NCBI RefSeq assembly: GCF_036321535.1
Contig: NC_087462.1
Coordinates: 6,138,001-6,202,000, forward strand
Direction: 5' to 3'
DNA: 64,000 bases
Origin: Camelus dromedarius
Lineage: Eukaryota
Shown here: one piece after another, positions 25,880 to 53,017 of the stretch
How the letters are laid out: each line of letters begins with the position of its first letter
Position numbering within the stretch: the first letter of the stretch is position 1
Translations under genes and position numbers: made by a program
Notes under the pieces: model-generated
Database searches by the model: none
Told to the model about the DNA's origin: nothing
Seen by the model: the letters and a program-made list of their open reading frames with translations, nothing else

Positions 25880-28490
25880 TGCACACTCTTCTAGTGATAT
25901 TTGCTTTTTATAGCAGTTTTCAAAATTAAATATTCATTATAGCTATAAATCTTTTCAGTTTTGGATAGGTAATATTGACATAGACATTGAAATGTTTCCC
26001 TCCTGTGTCCCTCAGCCACCACTCGTCCCCTCCCTGGGAGACACCCAGTGTCGTCTGGTTTCCTGTTTTGACTTCCAGAGACATTTTTATCCAGATACAA
26101 GGAAATCTATACACATATTATATTTTCTCATTTTCCCCTTATTTTTCTTTATATATATTTTATACTTTCCCATCTTTGTTTTCTATTTTTTTCTTTTTTG
26201 TGTATTTTTAATTTTGAATTCTATTTTCTATTTTCCCATCTTTTGCAAAAATAATAGTCTGGGCTACTATAGAGAGCTCTAGACTATATCCTTGCTATTT
26301 TTTTTTTTCCCATGTAATAGGTCTTTGGGGTGGTCCCATATAGCCAGGCCAACTGTGTTTCCTCTTCTTATGGTCATGTTTTAGCCCATTATTCAGATGT
26401 CATCAGTGTTTGCTCCCTGCTGGGGTTCATGCAGTCATTGCTCATCCTTTGCCAAGCCCATGCTGCTGCCGCCGTGAATAACCGTATGTGCACGTCATTT
26501 CACCCATGTTCAAGGGCATCAGTAGGACAGATACCCAATGGGAATAGCTGCTTGCACCATCTAACCTGGTAATTTAAGAAAGTCCTTGCCACTAGAATAT
26601 ATTTTGATAGTTGATAGGGCAGGTCTTTCCTTATTCTTTTTGCAAAATTATCTTGGCTTGTTCTTGGGCAACCACTTTTGAAAAACCTTTATTATGGACA
26701 ATTTCAAACATATTCAAAACTAGGGAGAATAACGTAATGAACCTACACTGAACCAACAGTCAGCATCAACAGTTTCCAGCACCCATGGCCAACCTCGTTT
26801 CAACTTGACCCCCACCACAGGATCACTTTGAAGCAAATCCCAGACAGCATAGCATTTCGTCTGTAAAAACTTTGATAGATATCTTGAAAGATACCACCAC
26901 AAACAATAACTACAATGTCATGATCACAACTAAAAAGTTTAACAATAATTCTTCAATATCGTTGTATAGCTTGTGTTTAGAAATTTCTCCGATGGTCTCT
27001 TCTAGATTTGGTGTTTGTTTGTTTACAGTTTCTTCAAATAAAAATCTAAGCAAGATGCATGCACTGCCTTTGGTTGGAGACAGGCTCCTTTAAGTTCTGG
27101 GTTCCTCTTCTCCTTTTTCCCCTTTGCAACATATTTGTTGAAGAATCTAGGCTGTGTGTCCTGCTGACTTGACCAGTCTGATGCCATCCTTGTGGTGAAG
27201 TTTAACCCATTCCTCTGTCCTCAAGTTGGCCAATCTAGGGTCAGAGTCCATGTCCAGTTTTTGGCAAGTCTATTTCACAAAAGGCATTGGGTCCTCTCAG
27301 CAGGAGGCACTCAGGGTCTGCTTATCCCTCCTTTGGTGGCACAAGCCACCACCCAGATCCATCAAGGATGCACTTTACATTTTCTAAATTTTTATTCCAA
27401 AAAAATTGCAAACAGAAAAGTTGTAGGAAGAGTACAGTGTATAGATTCCACAATCACCATGTTGCTAAATTTATTTATCATACTGTATCTCCCCATCTAT
27501 CTATCCATTCCTCCGCCTATCCATTAATCCATCTCACGTTTTGGATACAAATCAAAATAGGTGGGTGTCACTTTATTTTATTATGGTGAAATATACATAA
27601 AATAAATTTTTACCATTTTAACCCTTTTAAAATGGTTTAAGTATACAATTCAGTGGCTTTAAATACATTCACAATATCCTATAATCAACATCATTATCTA
27701 TTTACAGAACTTTTTCATCTTCCCAAAAAAGAAACTGTCCCCATTAAATATTAACTCCCCATTCCCCACTCCCCCTAGCCTCTGGTCCCCATCCTTCTAC
27801 TTCCTCTATGAATTTGCCTTTCTAGGGACCTCACGTAAGTGGAATATTTGTCCTTTTGTGTCTGGCTTATTTCACTTAACATAATGTTTTCAAGATTCAG
27901 GGCTGCATAATTTTCCATTATATGGCTACACCACATTTTGTTTATCCAATCTTCTGTTGATGGACAGAATTTGGCTGGCTTCCACCTTTCNNNNNNNNNN
28001 NNNNNNNNNNNNNNNNNNNNNNNNNNNNNNNNNNNNNNNNNNNNNNNNNNNNNNNNNNNNNNNNNNNNNNNNNNNNNNNNNNNNNNNNNNNNNNNNNNNN
28101 NNNNNNNNNNNNNNNNNNNNNNNNNNNNNNNNNNNNNNNNNNNNNNNNNNNNNNNNNNNNNNNNNNNNNNNNNNNNNNNNNNNNGGTTCCGTTTCTCCAC
28201 ATTCTCGCCAGCACTTGCTACCTTCTGTTTTGTTTTGTGTTTTTGTTAGCAGCCATCCTAACAGGTGTGAAGCGCTATCTCATTGTGGTGTTGATTTGCA
28301 TTTCCCTAATGGCCTGTGATGTTGAACATCTTCTCGTGAGTTTATTGGCCATTTGTACAGCTTCTTTGGCAAAATATTTACTAGAGTCCTTTGCCTATTT
28401 TTGAATTGGGCTTGTTGTTGTTGAGTTGTAGGAGTTTTTTATAATCTGGACATTAATTTCTTGTCAGATATACTATTTATAAATAATTTT
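25880..28490 (-). mobile_element. Nested cluster of old L1 fragments (L1ME/L1MC/L1MB-like) between TYK2 and ICAM3
   Basis: AT-rich antisense L1 3' text (TTTATTATGGACAATTTCAAACA; GTATACAATTCAGTGGC; TTGATTTGCATTTCCC). Contains gap 27991-28184. Confidence 0.75.
27991..28184. other. Assembly gap (194 N)
   Basis: N run inside an L1 fragment. Confidence 1.
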
Positions 28491-29603: not shown

Positions 29604-32600
29604 ATGGTGCTCTCTGGGTTACTGTCCAGGGCCTGCTGGACTTCGCTCAACTACCTGCTTCTGATCGGCTGTCTGCTGCCCCCAGGTGAGGCCTGTCAAG
29701 CTTGGGAGGGCTGGAGTTGGCAGACGGATGGGTGGGGAGGCAGCCTCACACCCTGCTGCCCTTCCTGGCTGTGCAACACTTCTTACAATCAGATCTGCCA
29801 GAGCGCCCACCAGTGTCCTCAGGAGAAAGTTGTGGCTCCTTAACTCAGCCTTCAGGACTCCCTGAGGCCCAGCCACTGCATTTGATCTGTTCCTGTCCCC
29901 ACCCCTCCAACATACACACACAAACACACACTCTCTCTCTCTCTTTCTCTCTCTCTCCCTCTGCTCCATCTGGATCCTTGATCTCTGCCCATGATCCTCC
30001 ATCTGCCAGATCATCACCCTTCCTTTTTACTTGGATAACTCCTACTTAATCCTTTAAGACTGGCCATAGTGGTCCCCTCTTCCAGGAAGGCTTCCCTGAC
30101 TCACTAGAGGCTGCATCAGGGCCTCCTCTGGCTTCCCCTGCCAGCTCTCCTTGATTTCTGATCCATCCCCTGTCTTCCTTACTATGAAGGCAGGGACGAT
30201 CTAGATCTTGGCAAAAAGAGGTGTCAAATGGTGGTATCTGCAGATGAGTGGGTTGCGGGGCACTGGAACAACCAGCAGAGCCTCCCTTTGTTCCCATAGG
30301 TACCCAGGGGCAGGAGTTCCTGATGCGAGTGGAGCCGAAGGACCCAGTGTTGCCTGCTGGAGTATCCTTCTCAGTAAATTGCAGTGTAGATTGCCCCCAC
30401 CCTGAACGCATCTCCCTGGAGACGAACCTACTCAAGGAGACGGTGGGCCGTGGCTTGGGCTGGGCAGCCTTCCATCTCAGCAATGTGACTGGTGATACCA
30501 CGGTCCTCTGCTCTGGCTTCTGCAATGGCTCCCAGATAGCAGGATCCTCTAGAGTCACAGTGTACCGTGAGTGGCTGTGCCTGGAGGTGGGACTGGCCTT
30601 CGGCAGTGGTAGGGGTAGATGACCAATGGTGCAGGGGAGCGGGGAGCCCTGAGTTTGCAGGAATGGACCAGGGCTCTGACCCAGAACTTGGACCTGGATA
30701 TGTGTGTGTGTGTGTGTGTGTGTGTATGTGACAGAGACAGACAGAGAGACAGAGAGATACATCTCAACCATATGCCAGGGCAACAGCTATGAAATCTATT
30801 TATTTGGGTCCCAACAAGCATTTTTATTTATTTTTACTTAATTTTATTTTTTTCAACAGGCATTTTATTTAAATAGCTCATGTCTTTTTACTTACTACTT
30901 TTATTTTTATGGCAGATAACAGATTCATGTGGTTCCAAAATCAAAAAGTATAAAAAGGTGCAAATGTCAAATCTCCATTTACCTAGTGTTGGCTGAGAGT
31001 GGCTGCTGTTTGAAGTGTTGACACGTGGGTGCTCATTCAAAAGCCCTGGGATGGGGAGGTGTGCTTATGAGCCTCACTGCACACACAAGGAAACTGAGGC
31101 TCAGTGGGGTAAAGTCAGGGTCCACAGCTAGTGAGCAGAGAAGCCGGGAGTCCAGCTCCCAAGTCCCTGTTCTTAACAAGCTACGTCCTCCTCCCCAGAT
31201 CCTAAGTCCACTGCCCCTTTACCAGATCGAGTCTCTCCATGTTTAAAATTTGAAAATTTAAAGTAACACAATAGAGGGGAGGGTATAGCTCAGTGGTAGA
31301 GTGCATACTTAATATGCACAAGGGCCTGGGTTCAATCCCCAGTACCTCCATTAAAAAAAGTTAAAATAAATAAACCTAATTCCCTCCCCCCCCAAAAAAA
31401 ATAAAATAGCACAATAGACTAGAAAATAGCAGAGTACATCACTCATGGTACCTACTGCTTTGTGAAGCCTTCATAGAGGTGTCATATATGTGAGTAACTG
31501 AGTGTATGCTCCTCCTGTGTGTGCACCAGTATCTATATTTGTCTGTGTACCTATGTGTGTGTCTATGAGCATATGTATGTGTGTCCTTATCTCTGTGACT
31601 GTGTGCGTGTACCTGCGTGTCTGTGCATGCGTCTGTGTGTCTGTGTGTGCCTGTGTGTGCACATGTGTATCTCCATGAGTGAATGTCTGTAAATATCTGT
31701 GTGTCAGGATCTGTGCCTGTGTGCGTATCTGTGTGAGGGTGGATGGCTGTGTGTGAGCATACGTGGATGTCTGTATCAGTACATGTCCCTCTGTGTCCCT
31801 GTGTGAATTTCTGTGTAACATGTACATCTGCATATGTGTGTCTGTTTGCCTATGTGTGTATCTGGGTGTCCCTGTCAGTATGACTGCCAGATGCGTCTGT
31901 CTAGCATCGTGCAGGAGCCTGTGGGTCCTGGCTCATAAGAGCCCATGGTACTCATGTCTTCCCAACTCTATGTGTCACATGGAGTAGCTTGAAATCAGCC
32001 AAAGTGGGAGTATTTACACCAGAGAAACTGGCAAATGCTCCGTGTCGGGGCTCCCCGACCCAACTCCACCCCACCCCGAGAGCCCAAGCATTATTAGCAT
32101 TTGCCAGCATACCACTAGCCCTTAACCAGGGGTTAGATGGGGGCCTCCTTGTTAAATATTCTAAAAGATGTTAAATATTTCCATAGCAGCCAGTCTGCAG
32201 GCCCTGGTATGACAGCTTAAGATCCAGCCTTGAGAGGTGCTCCCCAGAGTCCCAGGGCTTGGTATGTGTGCCTGCAGGGGGTGCTGCAGCTGCAGCTGGG
32301 AGAAGACCCAGCCTAGGGCTGCTGAGTCCCCCCAGACAATGCAGAGCGCCCTGAGAGGCTGCCCCAGGCAGGTGTACCGCGAGAGCCTTGGGCACCTGGG
32401 ACTGATTGGGGCAGGCTGGACCAAGCTGTGGGAGAGGCCAAGACCAGAATCCAGGCCAGAAACTGCGAGGGGTCAGGGGAGTTCCTAGTCCTGAGATCAA
32501 GGAGACAAGTGGACACATAGGTCTGGAGTTTGGGAAACCCACCGTCTAATCCCTGCTCTACCCTTCCCTGGCTGTGTGTTCTTGGGCAGATCACCTCCCC

Positions 32601-35133
32601 CTCACATCTTTGGGCCTCAGTTTCTCTAGCCATAAAAGGTAAGAATCGTAGAAGAGATTTCACTGGGTTGCTGTGTGAATGGAGGTGGATGACATCTGGA
32701 AAGTCTAAGGAAAACTCAAACAGGAAATGTTATGATTTCTATTAACATCATAAGTGGCCATAAACTTTAGTCCCCTTCCTTCCTTTTTTTTCCCCCCTTA
32801 ACTGTGAGGTCCTTGGGAACAATGACTTTTATTTCAATGCCTGGCAAGGTGTCCGACAAAACAGGAAATAATAATCATGATGCTAATGACAATAGCAAAC
32901 ATTTATACTAGCACACGTCTAAGCCCTGTAGGTTTATTAACTCAAAGTTCACAGTTCTGCACTGGGCCACCCTGGGCTCCTCTCCACTCCCTCGGGTGGG
33001 GTTTATGGGGCTGGCTGGTAAGTTCTTCTCTCCCTTTCACACCCCCCAACCCAGGGTTCCCTGAGCGCGTGGAGCTGGCCCCCCTCCCCCGCTGGCAATC
33101 GGTGGGCAGGCACCTCAACCTGAGCTGCCTGGTGTCCGGAGGGGTGCCCCGGTCCCACCTAGAGGTGGTGCTGCTCCACGGGGAGGAGGAGCTGGGCCGG
33201 CAAACAGTAGCAAACGAGGAGCCCGTCGAGGTCATGGTCACAGTGCTGGCAAGCAGAGACGACCACGGCGCCAATTTTTCTTGCCGCACGGAACTGGACC
33301 TGCGGTCCCAAGGGCTGGGACTGTTCCAGAACCATTCGGCCCCCAGGAAGCTCCGAACCTTCGGTGAGGGAAGGGACTGCAGACGGTGGGTGATGAGCTG
33401 TGCCAGAGTAATGGTGCCCTGGTCGCGGGATTCCTGAGAATGGGGTGGCCTGGACCTCAGGAGCTTCTAGGAAAAGATGCCCTTGGCTATTGGGAGGGGT
33501 AGCCTCAGATGGGAGGCTCGAGGCCGTAGGAACTTTTGAGAAGGCTGTGAGTGTGTGTCCTGGGAAGGGGGCGATGCGGGATGCAGAGTCTTGGGAAAGA
33601 TGAACTCCTGTTTGGGGGATGAGTGTCATGGGAAAAAGGGCGTCCAAGGCTGTGACACCGCGTCCTGCTCACTCCTACCCTTCTTTCAAGCCATGCCCAT
33701 GATCCCCCCGCGCCTCGCTGTCCCCCGATTCTCGGAGGTGGAAACGTCGTGGCCAGTGAACTGCACTTTGGATGGGTTGTTTCCAGTCTCGGAGGCCCAG
33801 GTCCAACTGGCGCTGGGGGACCAGATGCTGAATACCACAGTCATGAGCCACGGGGACACGCTCACGGCCACAGCGACAGCAAAAGCAGAGCAGGAGGGCG
33901 TCCAGGAGATTGTCTGTAAAGTGACCTTGGGGGACGAGAGCCGGGAGACCAGAGAGAACGTGACCGTCTATAGTAAGAGGAGGCGGAGCCAAAACGGCTC
34001 CAAGGCGAGGGGCGGGGCTTCTGTAGCCTGAGCGGGCGTGGCATAGGGCGCAGACTAAGCGAGAGAGGGGCGGGGCCTAAGTAACACGTGATGTAGAGCC
34101 TGAGCGATCCAAATTGGGCGGGGGCTGCACAGTAGCCTAAATATCCCGAGGGGAAGGAGGCGGGAGGCGGCGGGGCTTGACTCAAGAGGTGTGTGGTCAG
34201 TCAACTCCAGGGCAATGCCCCGCCTTTAGACTTACAGGGGCCCATCCTGACCCTGAGCGAGCCTAACGCCACTGAGGGGACCACAATGACCGTGACTTGC
34301 AAGGCTGGACCCAGAGTCCAGGTCACGCTGGACGGAATTCCAGCCGCAGCACCGGGACAGCCCTCCCAGCTTCAGCTAAACGTCACAGAGAGGGACGACA
34401 GGCGCACCTTCTTCTGCTATGCCACCCTCAAGGTGCATGGGGAGACCTTGCACAGTAACAGGAGTGTCCAGTTGCGTGTCCTGTGTGAGTAGGTCACTCT
34501 GATCTTTAGTAGCGTGCTTCCTTGATTTGGGAAGACGACTCGCCCTTGCCCCACTGTACCTCGGGTGTGTTGGGTATGTCTGATCATTTGGCGATCCCAC
34601 AGACGGCCCCAAGATTGACCGAGCTCAATGTCCCCAGCGCTTGACGTGGAAAGATAAGACTATGCATATCCTGCAGTGCCCGGTCCGGGGCAACCCGAAC
34701 CCCCAGCTACAGTGTTTGCAGGAAGGCTCCAAGTTCAAGGTGCCCATCGGGATCCCATTCCTCGTCAGGTTAAACTATAGTGGTACCTACTACTGCCAGG
34801 CGGTCAGCTCACAGGGCACAGACAGTCTGACAGTGATGATGTACGTTCAAGGTAAGCCTAGGCGGGGCTTATTTATTCCAGTCGGGCAAACTCAGGAGGG
34901 GCCGAGACGCGCGTAATTTATCCTTGCTTTTTTACACAGATCAGAACCCCATCGCCGTTACCATCACCTTGGGGGTGTTAACTATCCTGGGCCTTGTGAT
35001 TGCCACCGCGGCCTTATTGTACGTCTTCCGGGTGCAGAAGCGGAGTGACATCTACCATTTGAAGAAAAAGAGCTCCTGGCTGCCCCTCACGTCTAAACAG
35101 CCCGACGAGGCTGTGGCAGAGGAGTCATCCTGA
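29604..35133 (+). CDS. ICAM3: Intercellular adhesion molecule 3 (signal peptide, 5 Ig domains, TM, short tail), 545 aa
   Basis: Exons 29604-29685, 30300-30566, 33055-33363, 33691-33972, 34230-34484, 34603-34851, 34940-35133. Total 1638 nt, all phase-1 junctions. Kozak gccaccATGg. D1 begins QEFLMRVEP and keeps the integrin-binding LET glutamate and SQI glutamine. Position between TYK2 and RAVER1 matches synteny. Confidence 0.97.
29909..29960. repeat. Compound (CA)n(CT)n microsatellite, ICAM3 intron 1
   Basis: Read directly. Confidence 0.9.
30701..30760. repeat. (TG)n microsatellite followed by GACA/GA repeats, ICAM3 intron 2
   Basis: Read directly. Confidence 0.9.
31276..31409 (+). mobile_element. 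Vic-1-like SINE, long-tail form, in ICAM3 intron 2
   Basis: Full A/B boxes; CACAATAGA at 31267-31275 and 31410-31418. Confidence 0.9.
31480..31900. repeat. TG-rich low-complexity tract (similar tracts at 15330-15900 and 16540-16960; CA-rich at 56380-56770)
   Basis: Degenerate TG/CA dinucleotide runs. Confidence 0.75.
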
Positions 35134-35407: not shown

Positions 35408-35547
35408 NNNNNNNNNNNNNNNNNNNNNNNNNNNNNNNNNNNNNNNNNNNNNNNNNNNNNNNNNNNNNNNNNNNNNNNNNNNNNNNNNNNNNNNNNNNNN
35501 NNNNNNNNNNNNNNNNNNNNNNNNNNNNNNNNNNNNNNNNNNNNNNN
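35408..35547. other. Assembly gap (140 N) covering the RAVER1 start
   Basis: N run. Confidence 1.
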
Positions 35548-44500: not shown

Positions 44501-47500
44501 TGGATGTGACTGACAGTAACTGACAGAAGGTGAGGTTGTGGGCTTGGGCCCTTGTGTGGCTGAGAGTGATTCAGCCCACGTGTGGTGTTACTCACTGGGT
44601 GTCTGCAATCAACACGGTGTTGTGAGGGTTAGACACTGTGCTTCTTTGATAACAAGGGGGCTTGGGGTGGGGTGGTGGGTGCCGAAGAAGGACTGTCACT
44701 GTGTGTCTTCTGACAATGTGGGGTGACATGCTCCAACACTCTGTGCATTCATAATCTGTGTTCCCTGGGTCTCCCCAGCACCTCAAGCAGGCCCTGGGGT
44801 GTAGGAGGCCCTTCGTCACCACTGGCCAGGTGGGTGATGGCCGGTGTGTTGCAGACGTTGACACCTTTCATGTCTGCCTGTGGTTGGTTGTGGGCTGGAG
44901 TCTGGGTGTGCTGGGCATTGTGACCCACTGCCCTCATCTCCAGCTGATTGGGCTCTGTCCCTAGAAACCCGGGATCCTGGGAGACTCTCCTCTGGGCACC
45001 CTCCAGCCTGGGGCCCAGCCGGCCAACCCCCTCCTTGGGGAACTGTCTGCAGGTAATGCCTACCCCACTCTTCCCCCACCTCTGGGCCCTGTCCCACTTC
45101 CCTTTCCTGAGCCCCTTTCCTCACTAGGTGTGGTAAACTCCCAGCTGTGCAGCCTTGGGCAGGTGACCTAATCTCTCTGAGTCTCAGCGTCCTCACTTGT
45201 CCGTTGAGTGCCTAGGTGCCCACCTCCCGGAGAAGCCATGAGCATCCTGGGAGCTGATGCACTTAGAGGGCTCTCCTCTGTGTTCAGCATGTACTTGCCC
45301 TTTAGCTGCTGGACCTGGTCCACGTGGAGGCTCTAGGGCCCTGGGAGGATGTTCCTGTGTGGCTGGGCCACTGACACCTTCCCTCTCTCTGTAGGAGGGG
45401 GCCTGCCCCCAGAGCTGCCGCCCCGGCGAGGGAAGCCACCACCCCTGCTGCCGCCACTACTTGGCCCCTCTGGGGGTGACCGGGAAACCATGGGCCTAGG
45501 TCCCCCAGCACCCCAGCTCACTCCACCCCCTGCCCCTATGGGGCTTCGAGGTACTGGCCTCAGAGGCCTCCAGAAGGACAGTGGGCCGCTGCCAACGCCC
45601 CCTGGGGTAAGGCCCTACACTGCACCCAGCACCATTCCAGTCTTCTGCCCTGCGAGGTACCCCCTACCTGGGGCCCTCGTGAGTCTGGCCCTCTCACCAC
45701 AGGTCTCACTGCTGGGGGAACCCCCCAAGGACTNNNNNNNNNNNNNNNNNNNNNNNNNNNNNNNNNNNNNNNNNNNNNNNNNNNNNNNNNNNNNNNNNNN
45801 NNNNNNNNNNNNNNNNNNNNNNNNNNNNNNNNNNNNNNNNNNNNNNNNNNNNNNNNNNNNNNNNNCCCCAGCCCCCGGAAGTGGTGGCAGCAGCAAAGCC
45901 TTCCCGCTCAAGTCCCGCCTGCTCAGCCCCCTCACCAGCACCCGCCTGCCACCTGAACCAGGGCTGCCCGACAGTTATGGCTTTGACTACCCCTCGGTGA
46001 GTAACTGGCCGCCCTGTGGGGAGCCCTCCCAGGGACTAGCTGCTGTGGCCCTTTGTCCCCTGGGAGCAAGTCGTTGTCCAGACCGATATTTCTCTAGTAC
46101 TGGCTGCCAGGCAGGGCGCTAGGGAGACAGCGGGGAACGTGTCAGACACGGTTGCTGCCCTTAAGTCTCTGTCTGTCTCTCTGCATCAGACCCTGCTTCC
46201 TGTCAGTTGTCTTTCTCTCCTGAGAGGCCTTAGGCCACACTTCTGCTTCCCCTTAGAGACAGGGTTCAGCCTCCTTTCTGTCTCTCTGTCTTCCTCCCTG
46301 CTCTCCCCTCTGCGATTCCTGTCCCTGTCCCTGCAGAGCTGCTCCTTCTGTGATTCCAGCTTCCTCTAGGTCAGAGATTGCAGCCTCGCCACCTGTATTA
46401 CGTTTGGCCCAAACTAGATTAAGGAAAAAAAAAACGAATAGAAGCCAGTGCCAACATACAGAACCTGCAAGAGTTTGCACAACCTAGATGCCCAGCTTGC
46501 CTCGAAAACTCCAAACCCTTGGCCCCATCGGGGCCACACACCTTCACAGCAGTCATCTCTGGGGCTGAGGTGCAGCCACCCCCTGGGATGGGGCACCTAT
46601 TCTGTCTCATTGCCCGACCCTGCAGGCTGAGTGGGCTCTTATGCACTGTGTCTATTGGAGGGGGCTGACTTCCCTGATGACAACTGTGCTGTGGAATTGA
46701 GTCAGGGGTGAAGTTGGTTACCGACCCCAACCCAACATGCTGCTTCTCCCACTTTCATTCAGGATGTGGGACCTCGACGGCTCTTCTCCCACCCACGGGA
46801 GCCAACCCTAGGGCCTCACGGACCCAGCCGACACAAAGTAATTGCTGCCCTGTCCATCCCACCACCTGAGTGTTAGCTTTTGCTGCATAACAAGCAGTCC
46901 CATTACTTCATGGCTTGGAACAGCAAACATTTGATTGTTTCTCATCATTCTGTGGGGTGGTGGGTGGGTGGTTGTCTGCAGTCACCTGGCAGTTCAGCTG
47001 CAGCTCAGTGGTCCATGGTGGCTTCTTTCATTTGTCTGGTGGTCAGTAGGCTGGTGAAGGGGCCTCGGCTGCAAGGACTTACCTGCTCCATATGGGGCTT
47101 ATCCTCCAGCAGGCCAACCTGTGCTCCTGCATGTGGTGGTGGTTCCAGAGGTCCCTGGAGGAGGAAGGGAGGGTGGACCCCTCTGCTGGCATTGTCATAC
47201 TCCTATCCCATTGGTCAAAGCCTGGAATTGTTTGGGGATCTATGAAAGGAGATAGTACTGCAGCGATCCATCTTACTCAGCCAGCTCTCTCTCTGCAGAT
47301 GTCCCCCCCACCCAGTGGCTTTGGCGAACGGGGTGGCGGAGGTGGCGGCGGGCCGCTCTCCCACTTCTATTCGGGCTCACCCACCTCCTACTTCACTAGC
47401 GGCCTGCAGGCTGGCCTCAAGCAGAGCCACCTTAACAAGGTGAGGAGCCTCCCCAGCCCACTGCAGGTCCTCAGGGACAGCCAAGATGCAGGGGGCCCCT

Positions 47501-48149
47501 GTGACCCTTAATGCCTAGGTCAAGGCTGGGGTGGTGGCAGGGGTCAGTCTGCTCAGGGCTGGGCTGAAACTAGCCATCTTCCCCTCCCCAAGCCTGTGTG
47601 TCTCACACCGTGTATTGCCCAGCCTTCCTGGCCTCTTACATCCTCCCACAACAGCCCTGGGTGTGGATGGAATTAGCCCAGTCCACAGATGAAGAAACTG
47701 AGGCCCAGAGAGATGAATTAATATCATAGCTAGTAAGAGGCAGAGGCAAGGTTTGAACCTGAAACCCTTGCCTCTGCTCTGGGGACTGCTTCCTCTCCCA
47801 TCCCATGTCTCTCCCATTTCTCCCAGGTGGTCGGCTCCTCCCCTCTGAGCTCTGGAGAAGGGCTCCTGGGCCTTGGCCCTGGGCCCAATGGCCACAGCCA
47901 CTTGCTGAAGGTATGGGCAGGGGGTGGGGACATGCAACGCTGGGGAGCCATGGCCCCTGGGTGGCCCCTGACCCATTGCCACTCCTTCCCCTTTGTCTCC
48001 AGACCCCGCTGGGTGGCCAGAAACGCAGCTTCGCCCACCTGTTGCCCTCACCTGAGCCAAGCCCAGAAGGCAGCTACGTGGGTCAGCACTCCCAGGGCCT
48101 TGGCGGCCACTACGCAGATTCCTACCTGAAGCGCAAGAGGATTTTCTAA
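35548..48149 (+). CDS. RAVER1: Ribonucleoprotein PTB-binding 1 (3 RRMs, four PRI motifs, C-terminal NLS); 5'-partial because the ATG lies in gap 35408-35547
   Basis: Exons <35548-35709, 37254-37320, 39319-39788, 43265-43456, 43588-43717, 44069-44163, 44965-45052, 45395-45606, 45703-45996 (contains gap), 46763-46837, 47299-47439, 47827-47910, 48003-48149. PRI motifs [21 protein letters not shown] and GLLGLGP are all present. Ends YLKRKRIF*. Confidence 0.97.
38380..38900 (-). mobile_element. L2 3' fragment in RAVER1 intron 2
   Basis: TGTTGAGCACTTACTGTGTGCTGGGCACTG...GCAAAGGCCCCAGG. Confidence 0.55.
45734..45865. other. Assembly gap (132 N) inside RAVER1 exon 9
   Basis: N run; reading frame is preserved across it. 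Confidence 1.
46871..47230. mobile_element. Old MaLR LTR (MLT1F/H-like) in RAVER1 intron 10
   Basis: TGTTAGCTTTTGCTGCATAACAA...TTTCTCATCATTCTGTGGG...CCATTGGTCAAAGC. Confidence 0.55.

Positions 48150-49612: not shown

Positions 49613-53017
<3,405 letters not shown>

Follow-up and report, generated by a model that had tools for sequence, protein, structure and literature searches.

Alternative splicing coupled to nonsense-mediated decay (AS-NMD) lets splicing factors regulate their own levels, as in the skipping of PTBP1 exon 11 and the conserved poison cassettes of SR and hnRNP genes. AS-NMD control of PTBP1 is documented in a study of RAVER1 in splicing (PMC11039986). A second group, the SRRM3/4-dependent microexons, has a UGC before the acceptor AG, a long distance between branch point and AG, and a strong 5' splice site, with lengths of 3-27 nucleotides (nt) given for microexons in an abstract (10.64898/2026.05.02.722430). 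Finally, PTBP1 and PTBP2 keep nonconserved cryptic exons silent, and the rare products of such exons are cleared by NMD (Ling et al. 2016, as cited in PMC7058386). Here, we analyze a 64,000-nt stretch of the Camelus dromedarius genome (NC_087462.1, positions 6,138,001 to 6,202,000 of the forward strand; hereafter the window, to which all positions refer). A preliminary description had placed a 33-nt cassette with a stop codon in intron 9 of RAVER1, a splicing co-regulator, and had put it forward as a candidate poison exon through which the level of RAVER1 would be tied to PTB.

We favor a different reading. With a probability of roughly 70%, chance gave rise to the cassette as a lineage-specific pseudoexon beside an old CU-rich intronic tract, and most likely it is not an evolved device for setting RAVER1 levels. 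The comparison with other placental mammals, the frequency of similar chance arrangements and the quality of the splice signals all bear on this judgment.

The setting of the cassette was described correctly. When the exon 3 sequence encoding an RRM was used as a query, it matched RAVER1 and RAVER2 relatives, and a full-length match then led to over 1300 proteins that bear the name ribonucleoprotein PTB-binding 1. Alignment of RAVER1 proteins by tblastn places 13 exons on the plus strand between about 35,500 and 48,149, so that "intron 9" is the correct count. Once exons 9-13 are assembled, the C-terminal 190 residues match Camelus dromedarius RAVER1 isoform X4 at every position. The frame at the end of exon 9 is set by the protein match, in which DSYGFDYPS is followed directly by DVGPRR, and the exon does end in phase 0 at 45996. 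Three masked runs of N lie in the window, including one in exon 1 and one in exon 9; they have no effect on the frame assignment at the end of exon 9.

Read in this frame, the cassette has the letters and coordinates first given for it, with ten residues, a TAG stop and the donor GTCAGA. The stop precedes the last exon junction by exactly 300 nt, the sum of exons 10-12 (75 + 141 + 84 nt), and is therefore well beyond the roughly 50-55 nt upstream of that junction used to recognize a poison exon. Inclusion would remove both the GLLGLGP motif encoded in exon 12 and the KRKRIF encoded in exon 13, in keeping with the predicted loss of a C-terminal PTB-interaction motif and of KRKR. The CU-rich tract, put at about 170 nt with the last 65 or so free of AG, measures 177 nt with 72% pyrimidine and 65 AG-free bases. 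It contains 21 overlapping PTB-type tetramers (TCTT, CTCT, TTCT or TCTC), which makes it the densest such stretch in RAVER1 and bears out the claim of dense motifs before the acceptor. Thus, the gene, the frame, the consequence of inclusion and the CU motifs of the preliminary description all hold. What finds no support is the regulatory poison exon, given that the signals of the cassette are unconserved and its conservation is intron-like.

To compare the region, we took intron 9 from ten species: a Cnephaeus bat, arctic fox, red deer, sifaka, pocket mouse, tamandua, tenrec, white rhinoceros, shrew and gibbon. In the majority of them, the greater part of the intron can be aligned. The cassette region gave no alignment in intron 9 of the pocket mouse Perognathus and no BLAST match in that of the tenrec Echinops, and it is missing from the shrew Sorex araneus, where the intron is only 208 nt long (L009:6409-6616). 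A focused alignment was made of eight species (camelid, Cervus, Vulpes, Propithecus, Hylobates, Tamandua, Cnephaeus and Ceratotherium). At the acceptor, the camelid has CAG; five species have GAG (Cervus, Vulpes, Propithecus, Hylobates and Tamandua), and Cnephaeus and Ceratotherium have no AG. The stop position reads TAG in three of the eight (camelid, Cervus and Vulpes), CAG in the bat, sifaka and gibbon, CGG in the rhinoceros and CAC in Tamandua. A donor GT is present in five (camelid, bat, rhinoceros, sifaka and gibbon); Cervus, Vulpes and Tamandua have lost it. Indels further alter the length and frame of the cassette between species, the gibbon having 35 nt.

The preliminary description had stated that its proposal would fall if the splice sites and stop were not conserved and if inclusion did not appear after NMD inhibition or PTB depletion. 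The conservation half came out against the proposal: a CAG acceptor, an in-frame TAG and a GT donor coincide in the camelid only. A C at position -3 of the acceptor is likewise confined to the camelid in this alignment, pointing to G, and hence GAG, as the ancestral state. Conservation, taken as identity with the camelid sequence averaged over eight species, tells the same story. It is 0.67 for the cassette and 0.69 when both splice sites are added, compared with 0.62 for the whole of intron 9, 0.63 for the CU-rich tract, 0.89 for the exon 9 tail and 0.91 for exon 10. The cassette value falls at the 90th percentile of intronic windows and far below the exon level. Judged by these alignments, the conservation of the cassette is intron-like, not exon-like, and the cross-species conservation of exon, splice sites and stop by which poison exons are recognized is lacking.

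Intron 9 itself varies widely among these mammals, from the 208 nt of the shrew to 2.1 kb in the pocket mouse (L005:13718-15820). The gibbon intron (L010:12445-13856) contains an inserted repeat with strong pseudo-acceptors, each a run of T and then AG, as expected of exonisable insertions. In RefSeq isoforms of Lepus europaeus and Oryctolagus cuniculus (P0272 and P0274), 34 residues are inserted between exons 9 and 10, as though intron 9 were very short and in frame there and were read through.

How readily do such arrangements arise by chance? Splice sites were scored with a rough weight matrix whose position frequencies only approximate those of classic compilations, and the scores are therefore approximate. 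As a null, we scanned intron 9 of the ten other species with the same matrix, lowering the thresholds slightly. Five of the ten have at least one pseudoexon with a comparable rough score, always at a non-orthologous position, and one set in the gibbon lies within the inserted repeat. Every one of them either shifts the frame or contains a stop. Because all of these chance pseudoexons are poisonous, the poison property is the default and carries no signal; by our arithmetic, about four-fifths of random pseudoexons yield a premature stop through a frameshift or an in-frame stop codon. Similarly, where a long AG-free pyrimidine run is present, the next AG will resemble a 3' splice site. Given the CU-rich tract, the remaining features of the cassette are close to chance expectation.

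The weaker signals of the cassette fit this picture. Its donor scores 1.7, compared to 4.4 for the donor of exon 9, and 53 of the 680 GTs in 12.5 kb score at least as well, or one about every 240 nt. Within 68 nt of the acceptor there is a single A (46315, 22 nt before the start of the cassette), in a context poorly suited to a branch point, and better yUnAy matches lie at least 69 nt upstream of the cassette.

At 3' splice sites, G is the least used base at position -3. A change from G to C at this position in camelid ancestry would have turned the disfavored ancestral GAG into CAG. The weak GTCAGA, presumably already in place, happens to follow after 33 nt and is directly preceded by the codon TAG. 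We infer that the spliceosome normally passes over the resulting pseudoexon or uses it no more than at noise level, because it is small, has a C at +3 of its donor and a poor proximal branch point, and has PTB-type motifs over its acceptor. PTB binding would hold it back further, and any inclusion product would be cleared by NMD.

Annotation and literature are in line with a silent element. An insertion drawn from this part of intron 9 is found in only one of the 127 RAVER1 proteins scored across the exon 9-10 junction, the Cnephaeus nilssonii model, which is a GenBank submitter annotation (GCA_030846915.1, L001:12255-12308, protein P0211). In this bat the orthologous stretch is an open, in-frame insertion of 18 residues, IPVSVPGNCSFYDSNVFQ, with a GAG acceptor farther upstream and the same GTCAGA donor as in the camelid. 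The exon is probably a gene-prediction artefact, and the model speaks to homology of the stretch, not to its expression. No RAVER1 model ending in the cassette was seen among protein annotations, in which NMD isoforms are seldom represented. Full-text literature searches found no description of a RAVER1 poison exon or of RAVER1 self-regulation. The paper on RAVER1 in splicing cited above is silent on self-regulation, and Raver1 is absent from the portion of the supplements of a mouse neuronal AS-NMD study available to us. Elsewhere in this region of the gene, Rhinolophus sinicus and Talpa occidentalis each have an annotated isoform (P0232 and P0239) in which exon 11 follows exon 9 and the in-frame exon 10 of 75 nt is skipped, so that exon 10 may be a genuine alternative cassette.

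Unlike the cassette, the CU-rich tract is found in many of the species compared. In the camel it ranks in the top 0.2-0.4% of 177-nt intervals on its strand of the window, by pyrimidine content and PTB-type tetramers, and in the top 0.2-0.3% within the gene. A CU-rich stretch at the matching place falls in the top 0.03-0.65% of intervals across the gene in bat, fox, deer, rhinoceros, gibbon and tenrec; sifaka and Tamandua have a weak one, and shrew and pocket mouse have none. The tenrec keeps the CU-rich composition though its sequence no longer aligns by BLAST. From this distribution we take the tract to be old and common to most placental orders by descent. A pair of similar CT-rich repeats inside it suggests that part of the tract grew through a small local duplication; apart from this pair, searches for tandem and inverted repeats returned only a 6-nt, 2.7-copy CCTGTC run. 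An Rfam scan of 45900-46900 gave nothing near any gathering score, and we therefore do not read the region as an intronic snoRNA or miRNA. We also considered selection on the CU-rich composition and rejected it as unproven. Retention of pyrimidines needs no selection, because transitions preserve pyrimidine status (by our estimate) and the identity of the tract equals the intron mean.

These observations bear directly on an alternative in which the tract, and not the cassette, is functional, serving as a PTB/RAVER1 platform that affects its real neighbors through exon 10 skipping or the rate of intron 9 removal. The extreme CU-richness of the stretch in six other mammals and the annotated exon 10-skipped isoforms would suit such a role. 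However, pyrimidine richness is retained under neutral descent, identity is no higher than in the rest of the intron, and the tract is weak in the lemur and Tamandua and gone from the shrew and pocket mouse. More than 420 nt separate it from exon 10, and skipping of that exon appears in just 2 of about 290 proteins. We regard a platform of this kind as unlikely. Far less credible still is the idea that the cassette derives from a rarely used in-frame coding exon of some mammals that gained its stop in camelids. The open insertion of the bat model, with its shared GTCAGA donor, would fit, as would the lemur, in which our reading of the alignment finds a CAG acceptor 3 nt upstream, the common donor and an open frame of 36 nt. 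Yet the bat model stands alone among the 127 proteins and uses a GAG acceptor, an open frame over 33-54 nt is expected about half the time by chance, indels shift the frame between species, and exon-like conservation is lacking.

The strongest points against a chance origin would favor a young, camelid-specific AS-NMD cassette. Under this alternative, PTBP1 and RAVER1 on the CU-rich tract would silence the cassette, and a drop in PTBP1 would lead to its inclusion and to degradation of RAVER1 mRNA; a rise of SRRM4 in neurons might aid inclusion through the UGC, lowering RAVER1 in camelid neurons. Several features weigh on this side. By the rough matrix, the acceptor, a CAG behind a strong pyrimidine tract, scores within the top 7 of the 909 AGs that the gene contains. 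Beyond the known exons, and known acceptors paired with other donors, the cassette is the sole pair that reaches its own thresholds, and it is therefore a good pseudoexon by local standards. The single G-to-C change produced the CAG acceptor and the UGC motif at once, and this UGC, abutting the AG, is a trait of regulated neural microexons. So is the long AG-free zone, whose 65 nt imply a distant branch point of the SRRM3/4 type. The stop is suitably placed for NMD, PTBP1 itself is under AS-NMD control, and a young function peculiar to camelids could exist despite the non-conservation. Nevertheless, the CAG, TAG and GT are not kept together outside the camelid, and conservation is intron-like. 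The donor is weak, with C at +3, whereas SRRM3/4 microexons are described with strong 5' splice sites, and 33 nt exceeds the 3-27 nt given for microexons (abstract of 10.64898/2026.05.02.722430). Annotation and literature lend no support, and RAVER1 regulation, if important, would be expected to be common to mammals. On balance, we consider a young camelid switch improbable and retain the chance pseudoexon as our preferred explanation.

Coordinates of the features discussed, in window positions
Feature	Position	Strand	Remarks
CU-rich tract	46160-46336	+	177 nt, 72% pyrimidine
Direct repeat pair in tract	46169-46197, 46274-46302	+	29 nt, CT-rich; 76% alike, 105 nt apart
AG-free zone	46270-46334	+	65 nt; preceding AG at 46268-46269
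Candidate 3' splice site	46332-46336	+	TGCAG; AG at 46335-46336, C at -3 = 46334
Candidate cassette	46337-46369	+	33 nt; in exon 9 frame, 10 residues then TAG (46367-46369)
Candidate 5' splice site	46370-46375	+	GTCAGA; T at -3, C at +3
RAVER1 exon 9, 3' part	45866-45996	+	phase 0 end, ...DSYGFDYPS; donor TCG/GTGAGT
RAVER1 exon 10	46763-46837	+	75 nt, 25 residues
RAVER1 exon 11	47299-47439	+	141 nt
RAVER1 exon 12	47827-47910	+	84 nt; GLLGLGP (PTB-interaction-type motif)
RAVER1 exon 13 (last)	48003-48149	+	ends ...YLKRKRIF then stop
Masked N run	27991-28184		
Masked N run	35408-35547		in RAVER1 exon 1
Masked N run	45734-45865		in RAVER1 exon 9
ICAM-family gene	~30000-35000	+	Ig-domain exons
Dinucleotide-rich stretches in ICAM region	~30550-30800, 31470-31830		CA/TG type; THTH runs in minus-strand open reading frame translations
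Ferredoxin-2-like (FDX2-like) first exon	49824-50330	+	

The surroundings of RAVER1 comprise the ICAM-family gene upstream and, downstream, the FDX2-like exon and ZGLP1 sequences. The resulting order of ICAM, RAVER1, FDX2 and ZGLP1 is, we presume, the layout of other mammals.

What is at stake in the choice of reading is the place of RAVER1 in PTB biology. A real and conserved poison exon would bring RAVER1 into the cross-regulatory AS-NMD network of the PTB family and would give a simple account of how the level of a co-repressor could track that of PTBP1. The locus offers a more general lesson: when a splicing-factor intron contains a pyrimidine tract with an AG and, a short way on, a weak GT, this is not evidence of autoregulation without conservation or RNA data.

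Set against autoregulatory AS-NMD, the locus has the right kind of gene, a splicing co-regulator, with a stop that precedes the last junction by more than 50 nt and candidate motifs for its partner protein flanking the cassette. However, the known events are conserved, often extremely so, and come with transcript and knockdown evidence, whereas the cassette signals are limited to one lineage and its conservation is that of an intron.

The likeness to SRRM3/4 microexons is found mainly around the acceptor: the UGC at the AG, the long pyrimidine-rich AG-free zone, the nearby PTB-type motifs and the small size. Even so, the cassette is longer than the 3-27 nt range, and its 5' splice site is weak where theirs is strong. 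It also contains a stop, whereas they are coding, and it is nonconserved, in contrast to neural microexons, which exceed every other class of alternative exon in conservation.

The nonconserved cryptic exons repressed by PTBP1 and PTBP2 (Ling et al. 2016, as cited in PMC7058386) share several traits with the cassette. Like them, it is intronic, nonconserved and missing from protein annotations, its inclusion would create an NMD target, and CU-rich PTB-type motifs lie over and upstream of its 3' splice site. The class is defined by RNA that appears after PTBP1/2 depletion, whereas the cassette is known from sequence alone, and it is therefore at most a candidate member. Were it to be included upon loss of PTBP1/2, it would join this known class of nonconserved PTB-repressed cryptic exons and would not be a case of evolved autoregulation.

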